A stretch of DNA of 63,426 nucleotides, counting the filler, from Hyphochytrium catenoides (lineage: Eukaryota; Protista; Hyphochytriomycota): NCBI GenBank assembly GCA_900088475.1. It is 7 parts of 7 records of this genome, joined end to end, with 100 filler letters (N's around TTAATTAATTAA, not from the genome) between each part and the next. Parts side by side here need not be neighbours in the genome. Positions count along the whole stretch, not along the records: positions 1 to 14,196 come from FLMG01002302.1; 6 more parts are not named here. One strand, 5' to 3'. The position numbers were made by a program, and so were the translations under genes. A model generated the notes under the pieces. The model saw only the letters and a list, made by a program, of their open reading frames with translations, did no database searches and was not told the DNA's origin. Shown here piece by piece: positions 1-14,196 of the stretch. Each line of letters begins with the position of its first letter. The first letter of the stretch is position 1.

Positions 1-264
1 GCAGCAGAGAGAGACAGAGCGATGGATGATGATGTCCCACCCAGCCTGAACCTAACATGAGAGAAGACACAAGAAAGAGTCTCTCCTCTGGTCAGACAGA
101 GTAAAGTACAATGTAGGGACTCCTATGTAAGAGAGGTGAGAGTAAGGACTTGAAGAGACAGAAATTGACCGTTGTTGTGCCGCTGTAGAGGGTTTCTCCC
201 TCTTTTTCATTTTTGGGGCAGAACATGAAGGTCAACAAGGCTGGAGAGAAACTCTTCTTGTTCT

Positions 265-496
265 CGCTCTCTCTTTCTCCCTCTCTCTCTCTCTCTCTCT
301 CTCTCCCTTCCTTTCTTTCTCTCTTCCGCTTTTGGCGCTCTTTTTTTAGTGTTAGAAGATACAGACCGCACAACAGGAGACATACATCTCTCTCTGTTCT
401 CTACTTCTCTGCATCGCTTGAAACAGTTGGACAGTGGAGACACAGAGAGAGAAACAAGAGAGAGAGAGATCAGAGAGAGAGAGAGAGAGAGAGAGC

Positions 497-556
<60 letters not shown>

Positions 557-2025
557 ACATCTTGTGAAGCCAACCCTCCAGCCTAATAATAGCCCTAAAC
601 AAGCCCAAGATAGCCCCAGCCCCACCCTTTCTCCTCCTTCTGTCTTTTCTATCCCTCTCAGCTTTGGTCTTATACCCAGCACGTTAGCTCTGTATCACCT
701 CTTTACCTATATTAACGCACTAAGTACTGTATCTTTTGAATCGTTATGCATATCTCTTTTCCACTCTGTCTCGCTCTTGAGAGCACAGTTTTGGATCTCC
801 CCTTTCGGGTTTGGGCCAGTGGCGCCAGAGAGCGTAGGGAGAGAGACTAAGAGGGCACGCCCTTCGACTTGCCAGAGATTGGCAACTTCAACCACCGAGC
901 TTGCTGGAGGAGACAGACAAAGGATTACCATGGATGGCAATGCGAGACACAAAGATATGGAACAAGTGCATATTATCAGTTAGATCATAGACAAGACAGA
1001 ATGGAGGCATAGATATTGCGGTTGTTTGCAGTCTCAAGTCATTCAAGAGGACATTCTGGTGATGGAGCCCCAAGGCAATTTACACGGTTTTGAATAAATA
1101 GCACTCTACTAGTTTTCTTCATAATAAGGGCCACATCAAATCAATAAATGTTACATAAACCACAATAAAAAGAATGATCTCTGGGGAGAGGTCATGCACT
1201 GACATATTGCACGACATGCACAAACGAGAAATAAAAATGTTTGCTCCAAAGTTCAAGTTGAGGAAAACAGTGTTTCATGGTTTTTTCTTTCCATCAAATA
1301 AAAAAAATGGGAGAATAATTGGCACCCGAAGATGCCCAATTCAAAGCATGCCCACTGCTTGCCCATCACAAAAATCAACAATAAATTCTGTGGTAATTTT
1401 AGGATCTGTTGTCTTGTTTAGAAAAATCTGTAAGTAAAGGCGATATAGCCCCTCAACAGTGTGAGAACTGCCAGCAAATCATCAGCTTCCATTGCCTTTT
1501 CGTCCGCCAATCAGAGGGCGACCTAGGTCTACCCCTGGTCCGTTTCATGGATGCTTTGGACTCGTCATAAACTGTTTCCCTAAGTGGACCCAGCCAAGTT
1601 TCTTTTGTGCCAAACTGGTTCCGCCGTCAGAGAGTTATAGCCTGCTTGTTTTCTCCTGATCCTACTCCGCATTGTCTTCACATCAGCCCAAACCTTTTAG
1701 TGTTATTCCTAGTATTTAACCGCATAGGTTTATTCGCCATAAACTTGGTCATCCGAAAATGTGCCGCCTTCCCTGTTCGGGGCCTCGCAGGTCCACAGAG
1801 GCTGCAATGAAGGCGAAATTTCACAGGTCGCTCTCTATGAAAATGCAGGGCCAAATCTCTCAAACCCTAACGTTAACCGTTGCAGGCTTGTATACCTGTT
1901 TGAAGTGATATGAACCGTCCAAAGGTATGCCGCACAGTAAGGGAAGGACGTGCGAAGCGAACTGTGGTTCAGTTCTAGGGGTCACACTGCCCCTTATTTC
2001 CTAGTTCCACTTTTCTCTCTCTCTT

Positions 2026-2065
<40 letters not shown>

Positions 2066-3153
2066 CTCTCTCCCCTCCTTCCCCTTCCACCTCACCCCTT
2101 CTCTCTCTTTCTCTCTCTCTCTCGTTGTCTTTCTCTGTTAATCCGTCCTGGTCCTCTCTTTATAGATCTCTCTATCTCTCTCTGTCTTTTACCCCACACC
2201 CTAAAATCGTTTTCCTCCCTGCTCTGGTTCTATGCTGCCATCTCTAATAAGAGGGGAAGAGGCATGCGATTGTTGTCTCTCTCTCTCTCCCGCCAGCCAT
2301 GAAAACAACATTAGTTTGACTCTTTCCTGCTCACCGTCGGAGAGAGAGAGAGAAAGAGAGAGACACTCCAAACGAGAGAGAGAGAGAGTGGCTGCACCGC
2401 CTGCGAGGAGCGCGGGGTGGGCCAGGACCTGCCGCCCCGGCGCGAGTTTTGAGAAAGGCTTTTCTTCTCTTTCATAATAGAGTTTCTTTAGCTCTCCGCA
2501 GATTGTGGGGCTCTTTTGCTTCTTTTTCTCTCTCTGCCAGTCATGTTTCCCTGACATCACATTCTCTCGTTTCCTGTCCCTTTGTTTCCTTTCAAGGAAA
2601 CAGACAGTCTCGTTCCATGTCTCTTCTTCTTCTTCCGTCGAAGGAGAGAGAGGATAACAGGAGAGAGAGACAGTAAAAGGTTCTTCCGACCTGGGAACTG
2701 AATGAACGAATGAATGTGAATGTGGGGATTCCTCGAGGTCAGGAGAGGACACAAGCGAGAGAGAGAAAGAAAAAGTGGGAGAGAGAGACAAAGAGAGAAA
2801 AAGAGGCAATCATGGGCACTGAGGCTCGAGGGTTAGCAGAATGAGATAAACAGGGAAGAGGAGAGAGATGGGAAGACTGAAGGGAGTAAAGGGGAAGACA
2901 TAGGGCACTGTTTCTCTCTCTCTCTCTCTCCCGCGCGCTCTCTCTCTCTCGCGCTCTCTCTCTCTCTCTCTCCCGCTCTCTCTCTCTCTCTCCCTCTTTT
3001 CTCCCTCTTTTCCGAACGTGCCTACTGATGATCATGCCGCCTTTTTCTTTTAGCTCTATTTTCACTTCTTCCTTTATAATGATAGAAGACTTTTCCAGAG
3101 AGAGAAAGACACACAGGATGATGGGCAGCGGATTGCAGGTCTAACGGACGGGC

Positions 3154-3192
<39 letters not shown>

Positions 3193-4197
3193 CGAGGGAG
3201 AGAGAGATAAAAAGGGAGAGAGACAAGCAGGAGAAACCCTCTTTCTCCATGGTATCCAGCACTGAGGCTGACCCGCAGCTGCGATGAAGGATTTCCGTGG
3301 ATGTCAGCGCTTCTTGGAGGGGAGAGAGAGAGATAAAGAGAGAGACAGCGCCGCCATCTTCTAGAAGAAGCGTTTCTGGTTTGATGGACATAAGACTAAC
3401 AACGGTCTTCTTTCTCTTTTCCCTCTTTCTCCCTCTCCTCTCTTTCCCTCTCCTCATTAATGCGTTGTCACTCCCGACATGTTGGAAAAAGAAGAGGAAA
3501 GTCGCTGGGGAGAGAGAGAGAAAAACCTTGGCGCAAGAAACATGGAGACAAGAGAACGAGAAAGAGAAGAGAGAGAGAGAAAGCGAGAGCAGCGTTACAG
3601 AAGCTGCGCAGGGCGGACGGCGTTTGAGCGTGTTTGTTCCTTCTCCAGATTTCTTCTTTCATCTTTCAAGGAGCTGCCGTCTTTCTCTACCTCTTCTTGG
3701 ACCTTGAAGACGGATCTTCCTTCTTTTTCTTGAACCGCTTGTCCTCCATCTCCTTGAACTAGGAGAGAGAGAGAAAGCGTTATAGCAGGAAGAGAAAGAG
3801 GAAGATGCGCAACGCCTGTTTTTCGAAGGCTGCCGCCCTGTGCTAAGGTTCGCAGTGGCAGAAGAGAAGGAGGAACAGCACATAATGTCCCCACGTTCTC
3901 TCTTCTCTCTCGTTCCCTATATTCCTTTCTCCCAGAGATGGAGAGAGAAGAAGAGAGAGCAAAGAATAGAGAAAGAGAGACGGCGCTGCAGCGGCTGTCT
4001 CCTATCTTTGTTGGCCGTCTGTTTTCCTTCCGTCATGAATCTCACATTGTCTTCTTGGAACTTGTTTCTTCTTCCTACCTCTAACCTGCCTACTAATGCC
4101 ACCCAACCTCAGCTTTCTCTCTTAACTCATCTCCAAATAGCTTAGGGTACTTGTACAAAAAGAAAGAGCTTCAAAAGAGAGAGAGAGAGGGAGAAAA

Positions 4198-4228
<31 letters not shown>

Positions 4229-4420
4229 ACAACAGAGAAACCTATAATAAATGTCCTCCTTTAACCGTTTGAGCCTCTCTTTCCTCTTCGTGCGAATAGG
4301 GCGGATCTATTGACTGGATCTCGGCTCTCAATCTTCCTTTTTCTCTCACACTTCTCTCACCTATGTCTCTTTCTCCCTTCTCTCTCTCTCTCTCTCACAC
4401 TCTCTCTCTCTCGTCTCCCT
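265..4420. repeat. Region dense in (CT)n/(AG)n microsatellites, apparently non-coding
   Basis: Multiple pure and degenerate dinucleotide tracts (about 265-320, 445-552, 2015-2125, 2910-3000, 3155-3185, 4175-4230). The ORFs here are ER/SL low-complexity artefacts. Confidence 0.9.
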
Positions 4421-6557
4421 CTTCGACTTGCCAGCCAATTTCTGTTTACTAGGTCAACTTTTGTAAGCGCCGCAGAGAGAGATGTAGAGCTTATAGCGCC
4501 ACCCACGCGTAGTGCGCTCGGGGCGTAGAAGAAAGAGAAGAGAGAGAAGAAATAGTAGACTCGTTCTCTCGCCCCAGGTCAATAGCCTTTAATGAAGAAT
4601 CTACGGCTCTCATCGGTCTGTCAGTAGCACAGGACCGTCAAATCTTCAATAAACTCTTTGCCTGAGACTTACATACTGAGATTCTGAGCCAATGACGTGA
4701 CACTGACGGTTCTTTCGTAGAGATTATGAGCTGCTAAACTCTGTTATAACCACGTTCCATGGAGCTATTGGGGCCGATGCGATGCAATTATAGAGTCTAC
4801 TCTTTGCATTTCGTAAGCGTTGACAAAGGGCTCCCGCTGGCGCCGTCAGCAGTGGGGTTGCTGCTGGCTGTTGTTTATCTACGACAGACATCGGCGCTAC
4901 GTCTCTCTTTCAAGCTCTCTTCTCATTAGCTGCTGATGCTCCTTTCTTCATTATTGTCGTTACTACTCTTCAGAATGGACCTTGGCACCATAGCTTTTGT
5001 CCCTCCTTTCTATCACTTACTTTGTCCTCTTGTTGGCTCCTTTTTGGTTGAAGATGAAGTCCATGCCAGTTATCAGCAAGAAACCGGCTAGAGCTCCATT
5101 AATAAGTCTACCACGTTTGTCCCTTAGGTGCCATTCTAGCTCTCTCAGACGTAAGGAAGAAAATTTCAATGCTCAGCCCGTCATTCCCTTCTTGCTGTCT
5201 ACGATAGGATATCCTCAAAACCTTTTAGAGGAGAAGATATTCCTGCATTCCGCGACCTGATGGCTTTATCGATCTATCATGGAAGAGAGCGCCTCACTCG
5301 TTGAAAGGGCTGAAGCGACGACCTGACCGTGAGAAAGCGACGACCGTCTTCTGGGTCATCACCCTCCTTACTCTTTTGGAAGATGTCTTCTTCGTTAGGA
5401 GACATAGTAGTTTGACAGAAGAAAAAGTGCTAATATATCTTCAGGAAAAAATCGCGGGATGTATTCCGTACATCACAACTCATTGCCTCCCTTTGCTCTT
5501 GGCCCCTGAAAACGCAATGATGGGCGTGGTGCTGCTCGTGCTCTGCTTCACCGATTAACTCTCTACAGCTATGATGTCCTCGTCTCCTTCTCTCTTCCTG
5601 CTGCCTAGCAAGTGCGATCCTCTTACCGTAGATAGAAGAAGCTTGCCCAGAAGCCAGGAAAGTAAAACAGGGACCAGGAAGGAAGATCGCATCCTCATGC
5701 ACTTCCGTTCTGCTCTCCCATACAATTCTTTAGTGGTAACGGACCGCCCCTGCCCCATCAACCCAATGCCACGCTTCAGCTAAACCGTTCCCAAAGCTTC
5801 AGCGGCCAGCTCTTGATAACGGGCCGCCTTGTAAAGGAACCGATCTGCAGGGCTTTCAGCCAATCAGAATTTGGGCAGGCTCTAAGATAGCCGCTAACGG
5901 TATTAAAAGTGTCATTATATATACGCTAACGCCAATTAGAGCTGGTTTGACGCCTCTGATTGGTCGGCAGTGCTTAGAGGATTCTGCATGCTGTTCCCCA
6001 GAAAAGCCGCTGAAAATGGCTCCCATCATTCACTTCACGCTTTGGGTCCGCTGGAAAGGGCATTTTCGTGCCTAACTAGGTCGTCTTACAAAATGTGTGG
6101 CATGCGAAGCTAGGATGTGATGGTCACTATTAACTCAAGCGGTCATACCAATAAGAGGTTGACCCATCTGGCTTGTGTGCTGGTTCTTCACTAGTTACCA
6201 AAGGGTAAGGTACTTTGGTAATCATATGTCTGGCGTTGAAGGTTGAAGGTGATGATTTTCTCGTTGGAATGTTCAAGTTGCAGGCACTTTGTATAGGAAC
6301 TGCAATACAGGGAAGAGAAGCTTTCTACCACTCTTTAACAACGGTCCGCGCCAGCAGATACTGCCGCGCTTCCTATTCCTAACTACCTGCCTGCCAAAGA
6401 GTTGAGCACTTCGTTCAGCGCGTCAGGTTGCTGACTCACAGTCTTATACACTTATACAAAGTGAAGAGCTCGTGCTCGCATGCAGGCGCGTATGAACGAG
6501 GGTGGTATATGTAGATTGAAAGAGTCTTGTATCAGAAGAGAAGACCGATCCAGATAG

Positions 6558-7540
6558 ATGGAGACAAGTGGCCCCTCCACCGCTGCACGGCTATGTCAAC
6601 CACTCGTCAGGTACCTCCAGGGCCGTCAAGTATTAGACGAGCATGCAAAAAAGTGCCTGGTGGAGGCGTTGACGGAAATCCAGAATTGCCTGACAGCTAA
6701 TCGAGCGAGCATCGGAAGTGGCAGTACGGACAAGTCCTTAATCTCGCTAAAACCACAGAAGGTCATGGTAGCCTCTTCCTCGTCGTCGAATAGTGGAAGC
6801 AAGACAGATTGCAGCTCAGTCGTAAAGCAAGGTCATCTGAGAAAGCTCCGATCCATCGTAGCTACCCGACCCTACGTGGAACTGGATAGAGAGGAAAGTA
6901 ACATCACCGTCATGGAACGACTGTTGTTTGGGAGATGGTTCTTTCAATGGTGGTGGAGCTGGCGAAGATTCTTATTACCAATTGTGTGGCTAACAGGCTT
7001 TGTGGCCTGCGTGCTATGCAATGCAACACTCCTTCTCGACAACAGGAGGTTAGCTTTGATCACTGGAATAGTAAACTTGCCCTGTCTGTGTCTCATAATT
7101 CTGCATAATGCTGCTTTAGCAAACGCCACTCTTTTCTGGAGTTCTCTACGCACATTTGAGGGGAGGTTGTTCATAGTGGAGGGAACGTTCTTCTCCATAA
7201 CAGTAGCTGGAATCTTCGGTTTCTCCCCGATCGGATGGTTATCGAGCCTACATGCCATGCTGGTCCTTGCGGCTCAAGTGTCGTGGTACGATGCTCTTCC
7301 AAAGGCGGTACGGGGGAGACAAAAGTTCGCCTACCTTCTCTTCTATAGTATTTCCTGGGTCATGACGTTGCTGATGTTTTACTTTCGCGTCCCACCCAGA
7401 ATGGTAAACTATATGTGGGATCCCTTGCATGGACTACACATAAGGGATGATCCGAACACTACGTCCCGATGGGCAATTCCTTTAGTAGAAACATGCCTAA
7501 ACCGGGGTCTGACTATTCTATGTTTGCAAGTAAGGGCCAT
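6558..7540 (+). CDS. Uncharacterised multi-pass membrane protein, 3' end lost in the N gap at 7541-7599
   Basis: Uninterrupted non-repetitive ORF of about 328 codons. A soluble N-terminus is followed by 5-6 hydrophobic helices (FLLPIVWLTGFVACVLC, LALITGIVNLPCLCLIIL, FFSITVAGIFGF, FAYLLFYSISWVMTLLMFYF). Confidence 0.7.
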
Positions 7541-8222
7541 NNNNNNNNNNNNNNNNNNNNNNNNNNNNNNNNNNNNNNNNNNNNNNNNNNNNNNNNNNNT
7601 TCCAATATGCTCATCTCCTCTTATTCTTCTAAGCTATTCATGCCAGTCAACAACTAGTACTGCTACGTCGCCCGTATTACTGCCAACCTTCCCAGTTGTC
7701 GGTCCATGTCGCATAGCTGGGCTTGACCGAGCTAGGTGGTGGCCCCAGAACACTAACTATTGTGATAGCGCAGCACTAATAACATCGTCATACTCACAAT
7801 AACTCGTGTTTCTCTACCAAGAAAAGCAAGATAAACAAATTTGATGAGTCTCCTTAGCTTTCTGGTGGGAGACTCTTATCGTTTGTTGCTTCTCGGGTTG
7901 GTTTGTTGCTACTAGTCTCTCAGGAAGTAAGGAAGAAGGCGAAACTCTATTCGTCAGCAGTGAATGTAACTGAACTGTCCCAATCTCTCACTCCTTTCAC
8001 CTCTATAAAACATCGTAGTTAGAGTTTGGTCTTAATCTCGCCTTGAAAACGTCGTTCTTCCACATATAATCTCCGATGTCAATCACCTTGTGAACCTTTA
8101 TCACCGTCTTCCCAAGCACAAACTTCTACTACCTCTATAGACTGCGCGATACTTTCCTCCTGACAAGCCAGACCGACGCTACGGCACAGCCCACCGCCGC
8201 ATGCCTTGTCACCAGAAGGCCC

Positions 8223-8456
8223 AGCTGCCAAGCTTAAGATCCTTAAAGGAGTCAATCCGTTGCGCCAACGACGCCCTCAAAGACGATGTACAGAGATCTT
8301 ATAAGTCTTCAGAAGGGCACAAGTGCAGCTTGGGAGAAGGGCCAAGCTGCCATGCTTAAGATCCTTCAAGGAGTCAATCTGTTGGGCCAACGCCATCAAA
8401 GACGATGACAGAGATCTCCATAAATCTTCAGAATGAGAGGCACAAGTGCAGCTCAG
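8223..8456 (+). repeat. Degenerate tandem duplication, period about 122 bp
   Basis: agctgccaagcttaagatccttaaaggagtcaatc... at 8223 versus agctgccatgcttaagatccttcaaggagtcaatc... at 8345. Both copies end in ggcacaagtgcagct. Confidence 0.85.
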
Positions 8457-9009
8457 GAGCGCCGTCCAGCTAACAAGATATCCCTTCATTTTCAAAATCA
8501 GCATTGTGTGTGAGTATCAATGTGTGCTTTTAGTATTAGAACGGAGACAATAGTGGTTGTGTTTAGTAGTCACATTGTGTGTTTGACCTGCATTCTGGAC
8601 TGTGAGACACTCATCAAACACAACGTAATACCTCACCCACAACTCTCATACTTCTAAGCTCTACATGCTATACACAGGCAGATGTCACACTCACACGCTT
8701 TCCTGGTGGTGTTGGACACAATCATCGCTGTTCAGTGCTTCCGTCTCAATCCTTCGCCGCCCCAATGGCTCAAACTCCTATCGTATCAACCTAAAGGTAT
8801 TCTGCCCAACTATGATAAAATACCGACGTTTAACGTTCTCTTAGCCGCTAACGAGCTACGGCATCTGGAGATGAGCCGCCACGGTGCTTTATTAGTTGAG
8901 GCCAGTTTCTTTAGAAAGGCCGCCTCGCTGTCAAGCACAGAGCAGCCCACATTGGGTTCAATCAGAACTTTTGCTCTCTTTCTCTCTCGCGCCCTCTCTC
9001 TCTCTCTCC

Positions 9010-9093
<84 letters not shown>

Positions 9094-9481
9094 GTCTCTC
9101 TCTCTCCCTCTCTCCCCCCCTCTCTCTCTCACTTGCTCTCTCTTGCTCTCTCTCTCCGGAGTCTCTCCGTAGTCTTTCCCTCACTCCCTCTTGTTTCACC
9201 TTCCTCACCTCCTGTCTTTCTCTAGGAACTAATTAACTAATTGCTTCTCTACGCCAGCCTCCCGTCTTTTTCTTCTTCGCCTCACTTCTTACGATCAGTT
9301 GTAGAGTTTCTTTCCGAGCATCAAGTTAACAGCTAGGAAGCCACCTGGTTGGCTTTGTTTCTCTCTCTTTATCTCCCTCTCTTTCCCTAACTCTCTCTCA
9401 CTCTCTCTCTCACTCTCTCTCTCAATCCTTCTCCCTTTTTCTCTCTTTCATTCTCCCTGTGGCACTAAAAGTTCATACAAA

Positions 9482-10888
9482 ATGGACCGTCCGCCAGCAA
9501 GGAGAGAGAGCAGTCGAGGGCTCAACCTCGCAATACGTCTCGATCTGTCTTCTCCGCAAGGAAGAAAGAGAGCCGCAAAGCAGCTGAAACGTTTTCTGAA
9601 GAAGAAAGGAGCTCCTGCTCTTCTTCTTCTCTCTCTCTTTGCTTTCACGGTTATCCCGATCATCATCAACCTTGTTCTCTGGATCATCGTGAAAGTCTTT
9701 CTTCTTCTCTCTCTCGTCTTTGGCTATAGACTCTGGAGATCTATGTCCGGGGCAACCAGCTCCAGGAGAGAAAGAAGCAGTCTCTCTCCTTCCTCTTCTT
9801 CTTCTTCTTCCCATCCTCTGCCTCTCCCGCAGAGCGTACAGTCAGACTCTCGTCTTCTTTCTCTCTCTCTTCTGCCAGTAAAGCTCACAAGCTTTTCGAC
9901 TGGAGAGACTCGAAGATTGAACATAGAGACACGCTTTCTTACGAGAGAGAGAGTGCTGCACCATCTCTCTCTTCTCTTCCCAGAGACACTGCGCCATCAC
10001 ACGGCACTGCAGTACATTGACGAAGAAAATGACAGAGTTACCATCGGCACAGAAGAGGAGTTTGTCGAAGCGTGTCTCCATCAATTACTTAGGACTCCAG
10101 AGGGCAAAGGTCCGATAAAGCTTATGTTCTCTCTCGGCGAAGAGAGAGAGCAAGAGAGAGAAGGAGAAGAGTTGCTCTCTCTTTCTGATGTCACCACGGG
10201 AGTGAGAGCTTTTCTCTTCCAAGTGAAAGAGAAAGTGGAGACATTGGATGTTAACTCTTACCTCCGAGAAGCAGGAGAGAGACTGAGCAGGTTTGCAGCC
10301 TCTTTCTCGGATGATGAGGAAGACACCACAGAGCACACTTCCACTCCTAGAGCTGGTGCTTCTTCTCTCTCCTCTTCTCAAGGAGAGAGACAAAAGGGGG
10401 AGAGAGACTATGAAGGAGAGAGACATTTTTGTTCGCCCTCTCCAGCTTTTCACGCCTCTGATCTTCGACACCGTACAGTGCCTCAGGCGCAGGCATTTTA
10501 TCCGTCTCTTCAGAGCTCTCGTCTCTCTCCTCGTTCTTCTCTCTCTTCTGCCTCTCTCCCGGCTGTGTCTCCACCGTCTCTCTCTCCTCCTGCCCCACCC
10601 GCGCCGTTTCTCCCTCCTCCTGCCCCTCCAGCTCCACCTGCTCCTTCTCTCTCTCCTCCTGCTCCACCTGCTTTGTCTCTCTCTCCTCCTGCTGATCCTA
10701 CTTCTCTCTCTCATAGTATGGACACGGACTGGGAGTCAGTGTTGGAGGAAATACACGGCGAGAACTGGGAAGAAGAGATGGAAATGGTCAAACAAGTTCT
10801 TCCCTCGGTGGAGGAACAGCGCTGCAGGCTTCTCCTAAGGCAGCACGATGGCGATGTAGGAGCTGTGCTGGATCAGCTACTTAGGTGA
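9482..10888 (+). CDS. Membrane-anchored PB1-domain protein with Pro-rich linker, candidate LIR/AIM and C-terminal CUE/UBA-like domain (p62/NBR1-like architecture)
   Basis: Intronless 468-aa ORF. Contains a hydrophobic stretch of about 37 aa, a PB1 basic cluster VKL...TRRL, an acidic OPCA motif LQYIDEENDRVTIGTEEEF, DTDWESV, and C-terminal MVKQVLPSVEEQRCRLLLRQHDGDVGAVLDQLL resembling CUE. Confidence 0.8.
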   Translation: MDRPPARRESSRGLNLAIRLDLSSPQGRKRAAKQLKRFLKKKGAPALLLLSLFAFTVIPIIINLVLWIIVKVFLLLSLVFGYRLWRSMSGATSSRRERSSLSPSSSSSSSHPLPLPQSVQSDSRLLSLSLLPVKLTSFSTGETRRLNIETRFLTRERVLHHLSLLFPETLRHHTALQYIDEENDRVTIGTEEEFVEACLHQLLRTPEGKGPIKLMFSLGEEREQEREGEELLSLSDVTTGVRAFLFQVKEKVETLDVNSYLREAGERLSRFAASFSDDEEDTTEHTSTPRAGASSLSSSQGERQKGERDYEGERHFCSPSPAFHASDLRHRTVPQAQAFYPSLQSSRLSPRSSLSSASLPAVSPPSLSPPAPPAPFLPPPAPPAPPAPSLSPPAPPALSLSPPADPTSLSHSMDTDWESVLEEIHGENWEEEMEMVKQVLPSVEEQRCRLLLRQHDGDVGAVLDQLLR

Positions 10889-11147
10889 AAAGGATGGGAG
10901 AGAGAAAAAAAAAAGAGAGAGAGAGAGAGAGAGAGGAGAGAAAAAGAGGGAGAATAAGGGCAAAGAAGATTGCTATGTAGAAACGTTAGATATATAAGAT
11001 AGGCTAAGCCAACTTTGATGAAAAGGATGGGAGAGAGAAAAAAAAAAGAGAGAGAGAGAGAGGAGAGAAAAAGAGAGAGAATAAGGGCAAAGAAGATTGC
11101 TATGTAGAAACGTTAGATATATAAGATAGGCTAAGCCAACTTTGATG
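10886..11147 (+). repeat. Near-perfect tandem duplication of about 130 bp starting at the stop codon of the PB1 gene
   Basis: tgaaaaggatgggagagag...ggctaagccaactttgatg at 10886-11020 and 11019-11147. The copies differ mostly in microsatellite length. Confidence 0.85.
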
Positions 11148-11193
11148 GACAATATACTGCAAAGAGTGGCTTCTCTCCAAACAACTGAAAACG

Positions 11194-11224
<31 letters not shown>

Positions 11225-11583
11225 GAGAGCGCTTAAATGTTGTTGTTGAGGGACAGCCTGCAGTGGAAGAGGAAACAGAACTTTGTTTGCCTCTCTTACG
11301 AAGAGAGCAATTGAGCAAACGTAGGGAACATCTGAGTGTGGAGTGTGAGAGAGAGAGAAAGGAAGAGAGATGCGCTTTGACTCTTATATGTTTTCTTCTT
11401 GAAGGTAATGGAACTTGGAACAATGGAAGACAGCTCCAGCGTGTGAAAGAGAGAGAGAGGAGCCACAGATAAAAGTCCATGAAAGAAGTATTTGTTATCG
11501 CGATCTCTTAACATTTTACCGCGGCATCGGCTCTGCTCTGCACTACGAGGAGGGACATACATCTGGCAACACGAACAGGAAGG

Positions 11584-11614
<31 letters not shown>

Positions 11615-11816
11615 AAGAGAAAAATGAGAGAGAAACGAAGAAGAGAGAAACAAGACATTGACAGAGAGAGAAGAAGAACTAAAGAGAGACCTTTGTGGTA
11701 TAGCAGAAGGAGAAACTGCAGGAGATGTGCGGACGGGAAGAGAGAGAGACGTTTCTGAGAAAAAGAGAGAGACAAGAGTAAAGTGCGATAAAGAGTTCGA
11801 GAAAGAGCGTAAACAA

Positions 11817-12782
11817 CTACGGACTCTCTATCGCTTCCTCCACTGCAAACGGCGCGGGAGAGAGATTCATGTCTCCCACTCGTCTCTCTCCTTCTCTCTC
11901 TTCTCCTGATCCTTCTCCCTCTCTCTCCCCTGCTCTTCCCTCTCCCATTCTTTTCTTCTTAGACCTGTACGCAAAGAGAGAGAAGACAGCCACGGCGCCA
12001 AGAATCAGCGCCGAGCAGAGAACAATGGCGGAGATCGCGCCTGCATTCAGCGGTTGAGAAGAAGAAGAGAGACCTTCTGCATTCTTCTCTTCTTTCTCTC
12101 CCCCTCCGGACGTTGTCTCTCCCTCTCCTTTCTTTTCTCCTCCTCCTGCGATGGCACCAGAGGGAGAGGAGCTAGGCTCTGATTCGTTGATTCCTCTCTC
12201 TCCTTCTGTCTCTCTCCTCCCCGGCAGTTGAGAAGGGAAAGGGCTCTTCACAAGAGGGAGAGACGTCTCTCCTTTTCCCCCTGCACTGCTGTTGCTTTCT
12301 CCTGGTACGCTAGTGCTTGGAGAGAGAGAGGGAGAGACACTTGTTGATGGGCTTTCTTCTTCTCTCTCTTTCTCTCTCTCTCCTGGTACACAGCCTGCAA
12401 CTCCAGTCATCACAGTGGCACAGTGAGAGCCTTCGGGGAGTCTCTCCTGTGTTCCTGGGCAATTTCCTGCAAAGTTCTCTCCTACGCAGACAGGAGAGAG
12501 GGCGCAAAAGCTCTCTCTCCCTTCTACTGAAACAGCTTCGTGTCCTTCTGGGCAAGAGAGAGAAGAGAGAGACCGAAGAGAGAGAGAGACCGGTGATCGA
12601 GAGTAAGAGGCAGTGGCAGAGACAACACCGTCGGGAGGAGAGAAGAGAGAGAGAGCTGTCAGTAAGAAGGCGAGCAGAATGGATGATAGAGAGAAGAGAG
12701 ACTTGTGCCGTGTCTCTCTTCCTGTCCTCAGAGGAAAGCGGCGCTCTTTGTTGGACATCATTCTCTCTCTTTTTCTCTCCAC
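11817..12782 (-). CDS. Type I cell-surface protein with a six-cysteine module and a Ser/Gly/Glu-rich stalk
   Basis: Hydrophobic signal/anchor LFSLSSILLAFLLTALSLF; module CPEGHEAVSVEGRESFCALSPVCVGENFAGNCPGTQERLPEGSHCATVMTGVAGCVP; TM AISAIVLCSALILGAVAVFSLFAY followed by the stop-transfer RSKKKR. Start codon uncertain. Confidence 0.75.
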   Translation of the reverse strand: MERKRERMMSNKERRFPLRTGRETRHKSLFSLSSILLAFLLTALSLFSPPDGVVSATASYSRSPVSLSLRSLSSLSCPEGHEAVSVEGRESFCALSPVCVGENFAGNCPGTQERLPEGSHCATVMTGVAGCVPGEREKEREEESPSTSVSPSLSPSTSVPGESNSSAGGKGETSLPLVKSPFPSQLPGRRETEGERGINESEPSSSPSGAIAGGGEKKGEGETTSGGGEKEEKNAEGLSSSSQPLNAGAISAIVLCSALILGAVAVFSLFAYRSKKKRMGEGRAGEREGEGSGEEREGERRVGDMNLSPAPFAVEEAIESP

Positions 12783-13072
12783 GTTTCTCTCCTAAAGAAG
12801 AGAGAAACCAAGAGAAGGTTCTTTCCTTAGGTCTCTTTCCAGACGCGCTTCGGATTTTCTTGCGCTGGCTTCTGTTCCTGAGTCTTCTCTGAAGCTGGGA
12901 AAGAGAGAGAATGGAGCTCCTCAGGACAAAGAAGAAAAGATGTAGCTGCCTCTCTTTCTGACGCTCTCTCTTTTTCTGTGTTTGTTTCTTCCTCTTTCTC
13001 TTCTCTTCTTCTCACTCTTCCTCTCTGGCTGCCAGTATTTCTTTCTCTCTCTTGCTCTGGACAAAGACAGAC

Positions 13073-13133
<61 letters not shown>

Positions 13134-13299
13134 CACTATCGAACGTCCGTCATGAAGATGTCGGAAATGAAGTGCATCATCTCCTGTCTTACCCCTTGCC
13201 CGATCTCTGGCACATCTCTCTCTCTCGTCTTCTGGCCTCTTCTCTTCTTGATGCCGGCGGAGAGGAGAGACAGAAAAGGTAATGTGGAGCCCATGCAGC

Positions 13300-13334
<35 letters not shown>

Positions 13335-13480
13335 ATCAAAGGAGAGGACACACAGACAGAGAGACGCAGACGCACTGAGGGGAGAGAGACAGAGCGATAT
13401 GGTCAGCTTATAGAAAAGTCGGATAGCCGTGCAGTGTGAGGAAGAGAACAGGTCCCTGATTGAAGATTCAAATGAGGCAG

Positions 13481-13511
<31 letters not shown>

Positions 13512-14196
13512 GAGAGAGAGAGACGGAAGGAGAGAGAGACACAGTGAGAGAGAGAGAGAAGAAAGAGTGGACAGGATCGGTAGCAATGGATATTCGCTGG
13601 CTCTTGTCCACAGCCTTTTATGTAACTCCTCAGGATGCCTCCCTTCTCTCTTCTCTCTTGTCTCTTCGTCTCTCTATTTGTCATCTCACCATCACTCTCT
13701 CGCTCTTTCCTTTCTTTCTCTCTCTCTCTCTCTCTCTCNNNNNNNNNNNNNNNNNNNNNNNNNNNNNNNNNNNNNNNNNNNNNTTTCCTTCCTTTCTCTC
13801 TCTCACTCTTTCTCTCTTTTCTCCTCTCGTTCTCTCTTTCCCCTCCCTCTCCCTTTTCTCTTTCTTTCCCCTCCCTCTCCCTTTTCTCTTCCTCTTCATC
13901 CTCTTTCTCATACAGTACACGGGTCTCTCTCCCTCTACCTTCCTCTCTCTCTCTCTCTCTCGCTCTCTCTCTCTTTCTCGCTTTCTTTCTCTCTCTTGAC
14001 TTACTCCAGGAGAAGTTCTGAGTTGGGCGTTACATTTTTGGGAGTGAGGCGTCGTCGATGTACAACTCTGTTCACTCACTGTCGCGTTGCCGTTAGAGGC
14101 TCTACCAAAGGGTGCAGAGAAAAGAGTCTCAACTAAAGAGTTTCTACGACAGGAGAGAGAGACACGGAGTCAGAGACAAGGGAGAGAGAGAGAGAG

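Follow-up and report, generated by a model that had tools for sequence, protein, structure and literature searches.

The DNA analysed here (the window) is a stretch of 63,426 nucleotides (nt) from Hyphochytrium catenoides, and the subject of this report is a gene at positions 9482–10888 on its plus strand. We read the 468-amino-acid (aa) product of this gene as a membrane-anchored, PB1-clustering, ubiquitin-binding adaptor that probably passes ubiquitin-marked membrane to Atg8, and we give this reading a probability of about 0.45. Atg8 binding and a receptor role, taken together, are predicted from the sequence at somewhat under even odds. The open reading frame (ORF) is very likely a real, conserved gene with this architecture, and the sequence comparison indicates that the architecture is under protein-level selection. 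The combination of an anchor, a PB1 domain, an Atg8-type motif and a CUE domain is not previously described. The literature searched held no description of a protein with both PB1 and CUE, and the nine texts naming both were reviews of p62 and Tollip. A first-pass annotation had placed five features in this ORF (a hydrophobic segment, a PB1 domain, a Pro-rich linker, an acidic Trp motif and a terminal CUE/UBA-like domain), and all five were found where it had put them. The features are given below, with the AlphaFold2 (AF2) confidence as predicted local distance difference test (pLDDT) values.

9482..10888, plus strand: complete single-exon coding sequence from the ORF listing, 468 aa, stop codon included.
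9554..9607, plus strand: basic amphipathic helix before the anchor, aa 25–42 (AF2 helix, pLDDT ~80).
9611..9727, plus strand: hydrophobic membrane segment of 39 aa, A44–Y82, candidate monotopic hairpin (Kyte–Doolittle profile).
9737..9868, plus strand: Ser-rich disordered linker 1, aa 86–129 (pLDDT <50 for 100–127).
9869..10138, plus strand: type AB PB1 domain (both faces), aa 130–219 (Pfam, AF2, Foldseek).
10181..10309, plus strand: two amphipathic helices after PB1, aa 234–276 (AF2 helices 234–254 and 257–276).
10310..10717, plus strand: Pro/Ser-rich disordered linker 2, aa 277–412 (composition, pLDDT <50).
10721..10741, plus strand: D-T-D-W-E-S-V, aa 414–420, candidate Atg8-interacting motif (W417 at nt 10730).
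10769..10882, plus strand: predicted CUE-type three-helix bundle, aa 430–467 (three AF2 helices, pLDDT ~87).

Homologues were sought with phmmer, run exhaustively against 1.84 billion representative proteins. The search returned a single strong match, P0001 (418 aa, 41% identity, E-value 1.4e-62), and no close copy in annotated proteomes. The alignment with P0001 covered aa 19–296 and the C-terminus of the 468-aa protein. P0001 is encoded on L001, a 3.6-kb Logan contig, and the two loci are syntenic, with a convergent gene for a Cys-rich, Ser/Pro-rich single-pass membrane protein directly downstream in both species. The reading frame is open over the whole length of both orthologous genes, so no intron need be assumed. 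The nearest in-frame stop upstream of the ATG at 9482 is at 9302, and 9201 to 9481 contains no ATG in any frame, which makes the 9482 ATG the first for at least 280 nt. It is flanked by A (−3) and G (+4). The ORF of P0001 begins 7 codons past an in-frame TAG.

The proportions of amino acid-changing (pN) and silent (pS) differences between the two genes were obtained by the Nei–Gojobori count. Silent differences were saturated throughout (pS ~0.85). The pN was 0.374 in the hydrophobic segment, 0.375 in the PB1 domain and 0.525 in the weakly conserved linker 1, and the part comprising the motif and CUE was the best conserved (0.227). Because pN is low while pS is saturated, the hydrophobic segment is conserved as protein and not as DNA.

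Three distant relatives, P0002, P0003 and P0006 (257–384 aa), are homologous over PB1 and CUE (E-values 2.6e-7 to 8.4e-4). They begin with PB1, have amphipathic helical stretches in the middle and end with CUE, and they carry neither an anchor nor a signal. AF2 models were built with the five-sequence alignment, and the model of P0001 repeated the layout of the 468-aa protein.

The PB1 domain is well supported by profile and fold. PF00564 scored 31.1 bits against a cut-off of 23.6 (29.2 in P0001, 32–39 in the distant relatives), and AF2 modelled aa 130–219 as a five-strand, two-helix beta-grasp with a pLDDT of ~87. Foldseek matches in the PDB were almost all PB1 domains: NBR1 (2bkf) was at the top, followed by MEK5, PKC zeta/p62 and MEKK3, and plant NBR1 filaments, Par6 and p62 appeared lower. 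The target template modelling (TM) scores were 0.65–0.85 for the NBR1, p62, MEK5 and PKC PB1 domains, and 0.75–0.85 for 2bkf, 6jm4, 4mjs and 1wmh. A profile of the five PB1 regions of the family found NBR1 PB1 first (E-value 1e-6), then TFG and PKC zeta. The first run of the PB1 profile, with the p62-like L002, was discounted; the profile was repeated without L002 because L002 biased it towards p62, and this repeat was used. Without L002, NBR1 was still at the top and p62 fell below E 0.01.

Both interaction faces expected of a type AB PB1 domain were found. The acidic OPCA motif is Y178-x-D-E-E-N-D184 with E191–E193, and the basic face consists of K134 on beta1 and R144/R145 on beta2, which we take to correspond to K7, R21 and R22 of p62. 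All these residues are invariant between the orthologues. The Lys/Arg face and the acidic DEEND face of the first-pass annotation were thereby recovered in a domain that lies above the Pfam cut-off and superposes on the PB1 domains of NBR1 and p62. Type AB PB1 domains polymerise head-to-tail in p62 and plant NBR1 (PMC8394947). The two helices that follow PB1 were modelled at a pLDDT of ~56–66, have a hydrophobic moment of up to 0.60 and are kept in P0001. Linker 2 contains 29 Pro and 28 Ser in 136 aa, which bears out the Pro-rich disordered linker noted earlier; its coding DNA consists partly of 30–39-bp tandem repeats, with Tandem Repeats Finder (TRF) arrays at 10586–10693.

The protein ends one residue past a three-helix bundle. 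A profile of the five C-termini matched the CUE domains of Tollip (1wgl, E-value 0.0018) and CUEDC1 (2dhy, E-value 0.012), and nothing else of note. The loop Pro is invariant in the family (I-F-P or V-F-P in the relatives), as is L466 of the last helix, and the terminus reads L-L. On this profile and model evidence we accept the bundle as probably CUE-type. Of the CUE/UBA-like domain first proposed, the CUE likeness stood and the UBA alternative did not. Ubiquitin binding by the bundle is predicted as probable.

The acidic Trp motif D-T-D-W-E-S-V, with its Trp (W417) at 10730 as first reported, lies in an AF2 unstructured stretch (283–426, pLDDT <50), about ten residues before the bundle, and was modelled as coil. 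The concern that it might be buried is answered by this low-confidence, non-globular setting. The sequence has what an LC3-interacting region (LIR) or Atg8-interacting motif (AIM) calls for: an aromatic-x-x-hydrophobic core, acidic residues upstream and an accessible non-globular region. An acidic W-x-x-[LIV] arose in 3.6% of shuffles of the 468-aa protein. The motif is kept as D-Q-D-W-E-S-I in P0001 and as E-A-D-W-E-Q-V in P0006. An insertion of 3 residues between the Trp motif and the CUE helix of P0006 parts the motif from the CUE domain, which suggests a separate linear motif. D-T-D-W-E-S-V is, on its sequence, a credible Atg8-interacting motif.

The hydrophobic run with a Pro and basic flanks (KRFLKKK and RLWR) is present as described, at 39 aa (44–82) rather than about 37. 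It contains Pro59, Asn63, Trp67 and Lys71, and P59, N63, W67, K71 and G81-Y82-R83 are invariant between the two anchored orthologues. Across this region, 18 of 42 residues are identical to P0001, whose DNA there is non-repetitive. The preceding helix (aa 25–42) has a hydrophobic moment of 0.51–0.60 and a flank charge of +8, and its S-S-P-x-G-R motif is kept in P0001. At 39 hydrophobic residues, and with Pro, Asn and Lys invariant in its middle, the run exceeds the length of one span of the endoplasmic reticulum (ER) membrane. The adjacent 17-residue halves, 46–62 and 64–80, each have a negative insertion energy (Hessa scale), and the room between them is too small for a loop joining two full spans. 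The length, flank charges and invariant Pro, Asn and Lys are compatible with the monotopic hairpin class found at the ER and on lipid droplets. The most coherent topology keeps both ends in the cytosol, with hairpin or monotopic insertion, and we consider it reasonably probable from these sequence features. The anchor may sit at the ER or on lipid droplets.

Ubiquitin-type autophagy receptors require a ubiquitin-binding domain, an AIM/LIR and oligomerisation (PMC8394947). We propose that the hydrophobic segment would enter the cytosolic leaflet of the ER membrane, or the monolayer of lipid droplets, as a hairpin or in another monotopic form, leaving both ends in the cytosol. Head-to-tail PB1 contacts would cluster the protein on the membrane, as in p62 and plant NBR1, and the CUE domain would bind the ubiquitin carried by membrane or surface proteins nearby. 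The ubiquitin-marked patch of membrane could then be passed to lipidated Atg8 by the W-x-x-V motif. The outcome would be a resident receptor for ubiquitin-dependent ER-phagy or lipophagy.

A number of observations weigh against this reading, and they concern the CUE assignment, the Trp motif, the anchor and the number of sequences. Pfam CUE (PF02845, cut-off 21.1) scored 15.9 bits with the whole protein and 18.7 with the C-terminal piece, and it remained below the cut-off in every family member (18.0 in P0002, 15.9 in P0003). The M-F-P loop reads V-L-P in the 468-aa protein. In the alignment, the acidic Trp motif is absent from P0002 and P0003, two of the three distant relatives, so that the W-x-x-V first described is conserved in P0001 and one distant relative only. 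The motif could also be conserved as part of CUE, because it adjoins that domain, and a low-confidence helix begins with it in the P0001 model. The Thr or Gln at position −2 departs from the stricter xLIR pattern. The collections searched yielded a single anchored orthologue, so the conservation of the anchored form rests on two sequences. AF2 drew one straight continuous helix at 44–89 (pLDDT 85–94), likewise in P0001, and not a hairpin. The N-terminal profile against solved structures gave non-significant matches to type II single-span anchors such as beta-sarcoglycan, and a promethin/LDAF1 hint at lipid droplets was not reproduced in the orthologue. One sequencing run contained 5% of the sampled words from the locus; it gave a 151-nt contig over 10686–10836 with one difference and a repeat-only match, and, the kind of library being unspecified, this contig is uninformative on transcription, start or splicing.

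The main rival takes the protein as a membrane-anchored ubiquitin adaptor for ER-associated degradation (ERAD) or the turnover of lipid-droplet proteins, in the style of Cue1 and AUP1. Here CUE, brought by the anchor to the surface of the ER or of lipid droplets, would bind ubiquitin chains or help to extend them, PB1 would only cluster the protein, and W-x-x-V would not be an Atg8 ligand. The pairing of an anchor with CUE defines Cue1 and AUP1 and is matched here; CUE lies in the best-conserved part, and the Trp motif adjoins it and is missing in most of the distant relatives. However, no U7BR/G2BR or acyltransferase-like domain was detected, and CUE sits at the extreme C-terminus with nothing beyond it. 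The acidic W-x-x-[VI] is kept at 41% identity, and in P0006 despite the insertion. The joint presence of PB1, ubiquitin binding and an acidic Trp motif marks out p62-type receptors (PMC8394947). We regard this adaptor role as unlikely, and as the alternative to be taken most seriously.

A second rival is a PB1 scaffold that brings other PB1 proteins (kinases, polarity or trafficking factors) to the membrane, with a regulatory or dimerising C-terminal bundle. The PB1 domains of MEK5, MEKK3, PKC/Par6 and TFG also match well, and CUE domains can dimerise (PMC8394947). However, the best PB1 matches are autophagy receptors, no PB1 partner is known for the organism, and the conserved acidic Trp motif would be left unexplained. 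We consider such a scaffold improbable.

Equally little weight is given to a type II single-pass or secreted-pathway protein with a signal anchor, in which the PB1-like and CUE-like folds would be lumenal or outside the cell and have a role unrelated to ubiquitin. The N-flank is more basic than the C-flank (net charge +8 vs +3, and +6 vs +1 in P0001), so a single span would be N-in, with PB1 and CUE lumenal. The continuous AF2 helix, the weak similarity to type II anchors and the mucin-like surface type of the adjoining gene also point this way. Against it, a 39-residue run is atypical for one span, and P0002, P0003 and P0006 share the PB1...CUE layout without a signal or anchor, which indicates that PB1 and CUE act in the cytosol. 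PB1 and CUE are cytosolic or nuclear modules, and neither ubiquitin nor PB1 partners are known from the lumen.

That the hydrophobic N-terminus is an artefact of a CT-rich 5′ leader, with a soluble protein starting at Met88 (nt 9743), is very improbable: the segment partly overlaps CT-rich DNA at 9615–9650 and the C+T skew is strong over 8500–10000, but the start context at 9743 is poor (T at both −3 and +4), the second Met of P0001 (Met22), its alternative start, still precedes the segment, and the orthologue encodes the segment from non-repetitive DNA. The anchor is translated and 9743 is not the start, because the orthologue keeps the segment as well as it keeps PB1 while silent sites are saturated; the downstream start that the first-pass annotation had named as a refuting possibility was thus set aside.

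The membrane-anchored receptor reading matters because the receptors of selective autophagy have been charted well in animals, fungi and plants but hardly in protists. Here oligomerisation, ubiquitin binding and an Atg8 motif would be assembled from other parts (PB1 with CUE) and fixed to the membrane. Should the function hold, the gene offers a directly testable way into ubiquitin-dependent ER-phagy or lipophagy in a eukaryotic lineage that has been little studied. Should the Atg8 link prove wrong, the protein would still be a new kind of membrane-anchored CUE adaptor beside Cue1 and AUP1.

The PB1 and CUE family, with soluble members in oomycete-type organisms, is uncharacterised. The ESM Atlas contains a cluster of 55 members from Oomycota, annotated as "hypothetical proteins", with PB1 in 85% and CUE in 31%. 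PB1 with CUE recurs in this cluster and in the soluble PB1...CUE relatives, and the anchored form, in the collections searched, only in P0001. A more speculative and rather unlikely extension is that PB1-(acidic Trp motif)-CUE proteins are unrecognised ubiquitin-Atg8 receptors of stramenopile/alveolate-type protists that replace p62, here fused to a membrane hairpin. The fusion would make a polymerising, resident receptor that marks ubiquitinated ER or lipid-droplet surface for autophagy, one protein covering roles that mammals split between anchors of the FAM134/UBAC2 type and ubiquitin readers of the p62/Tollip type. Long amphipathic helices lie between PB1 and CUE in P0002 (residues 95–190) and P0006 (residues 100–300), with a moment of up to 0.65. 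The amphipathic stretches of the soluble relatives might bind membranes or lipid droplets peripherally and so replace the hydrophobic anchor. The literature search on Apicomplexa found nothing on parasite-encoded receptors of this kind.

Other searches added little. Word-index protein searches with the ORF, the five-sequence alignment and P0001 gave nothing useful, and their candidate lists were dominated by low-complexity words. The Atlas shape search with the whole model returned generic PB1 proteins only (TM <0.3), and the Atlas feature search with the N-terminus of P0001 returned no usable match. A metagenome scan gave only L002, an unrelated p62-like PB1-ZZ-UBA ORF. It lies at L002:61-1227 on the plus strand of a JGI metagenome contig from an AT-rich eukaryote, and encodes PB1, a ZZ finger and a UBA-like C-terminal end, with a match to the OPCA motif. 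The metagenome scaffold that carries P0003 has a second PB1 gene 2.5 kb downstream (L003:9266-10237, plus strand, 323 aa), whose product has a different C-terminal part with no domain assigned.

The convergent neighbour that is common to the two syntenic loci is as follows.

11817-12782, and L001:1929-2849, minus strand in both: convergent neighbour gene, conserved synteny.

Its product combines a signal-like N-terminus with a module of six Cys residues, a stalk rich in Ser, Pro and Gly, a single transmembrane helix and a basic tail. The six-Cys module is 53% identical over 60 aa between the two species. A Pfam search of the neighbour protein matched no family, and from its sequence it looks like a mucin-type surface protein.

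Positions 1–14196 are gene-poor and rich in (TC)n/(AG)n microsatellites (38 TRF rows), and an Rfam search of them found no RNA family. The C+T skew over 8500–10000 takes in DNA upstream of the gene as well as its 5′ end. At 10879–11147 a 127-bp unit occurs 2.1 times (93% match). It begins with the final codons and the stop codon of the gene, so tandem duplication affects the 3′ flank. A further ORF of 414 aa at 6558–7802 (plus strand) has several hydrophobic segments and no Pfam match, and its C-terminal part is unreliable because an assembly gap (N run 7541–7599) interrupts it.

Among known systems, the protein falls outside the p62, NBR1, AUP1, reticulon and promethin families, for each of which a defining feature was sought and not found. 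No ZZ or UBA match was obtained with Pfam at E-values up to 10, and no FW/NBR1 domain was found, whereas L002 shows both ZZ and UBA. The protein is not a p62/SQSTM1 or NBR1 family member, because ZZ, FW and UBA were not detected; the earlier label "p62/NBR1-like" holds for function and the PB1 domain, and not for family membership. AUP1/Cue1 membership was rejected, as there was no PlsC-type acyltransferase match in Pfam and no G2BR/U7BR, and the protein ends after the CUE bundle. A reticulon-homology domain (FAM134, RTN3L, Atg40) requires two hairpin segments; the single run at 44–82 does not provide them, and no Pfam Reticulon match was found. Promethin/LDAF1 (PF16015, cut-off 27) scored 21.3 to 25.0 bits over residues 23–80 and had no match in the N-terminus of P0001.

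The anchor places the protein beside several membrane proteins. Like AUP1 and yeast Cue1, it has an N-terminal hydrophobic anchor and a putatively cytosolic CUE domain, and the anchor of AUP1 is a hairpin that reaches lipid droplets. Unlike this protein, AUP1 and Cue1 lack PB1 and the acidic Trp motif. UBAC2, which resides in the ER membrane and has both a LIR and a UBA, serves as a receptor for ER-phagy (PMC11535055). It is likewise membrane-embedded, with a W-x-x-L LIR and a ubiquitin-associated fold in its cytosolic tail, and self-association enhances its receptor activity (PMC11535055). However, UBAC2 has three rhomboid-like transmembrane domains, a UBA and phosphorylation-driven dimerisation, whereas the present protein has one hydrophobic segment, PB1 and CUE, and no sequence relation between the two was found. 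The soluble PB1...CUE proteins of stramenopile type are homologous over PB1 and CUE, but they start directly with PB1.

The closest functional parallels are p62 and NBR1, and the CUET receptors. The order of PB1, a disordered linker with an acidic Trp LIR-like motif and a C-terminal three-helix module, here predicted to bind ubiquitin, is that of NBR1 and p62. The protein shares both PB1 faces with p62 and plant NBR1, and its PB1 domain matches that of NBR1 best, in fold as in profile. Unlike the soluble p62 and NBR1, the protein has an N-terminal membrane segment, and its putative ubiquitin module is CUE-type, not UBA. Like the CUET receptors (yeast Cue5 and human Tollip), it combines CUE with a motif of the Atg8/LC3-interacting type, and Tollip CUE is its best solved match. 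The receptor function of CUET proteins needs oligomerisation (PMC8394947). Tollip has TBD and C2, whereas here the membrane link would be the hydrophobic segment and oligomerisation would go through PB1; Cue5 lacks both PB1 and an anchor. By analogy with these systems, the mode of action of the protein would come closest to a p62/NBR1 and Cue5/Tollip hybrid that has a permanent place on a membrane.

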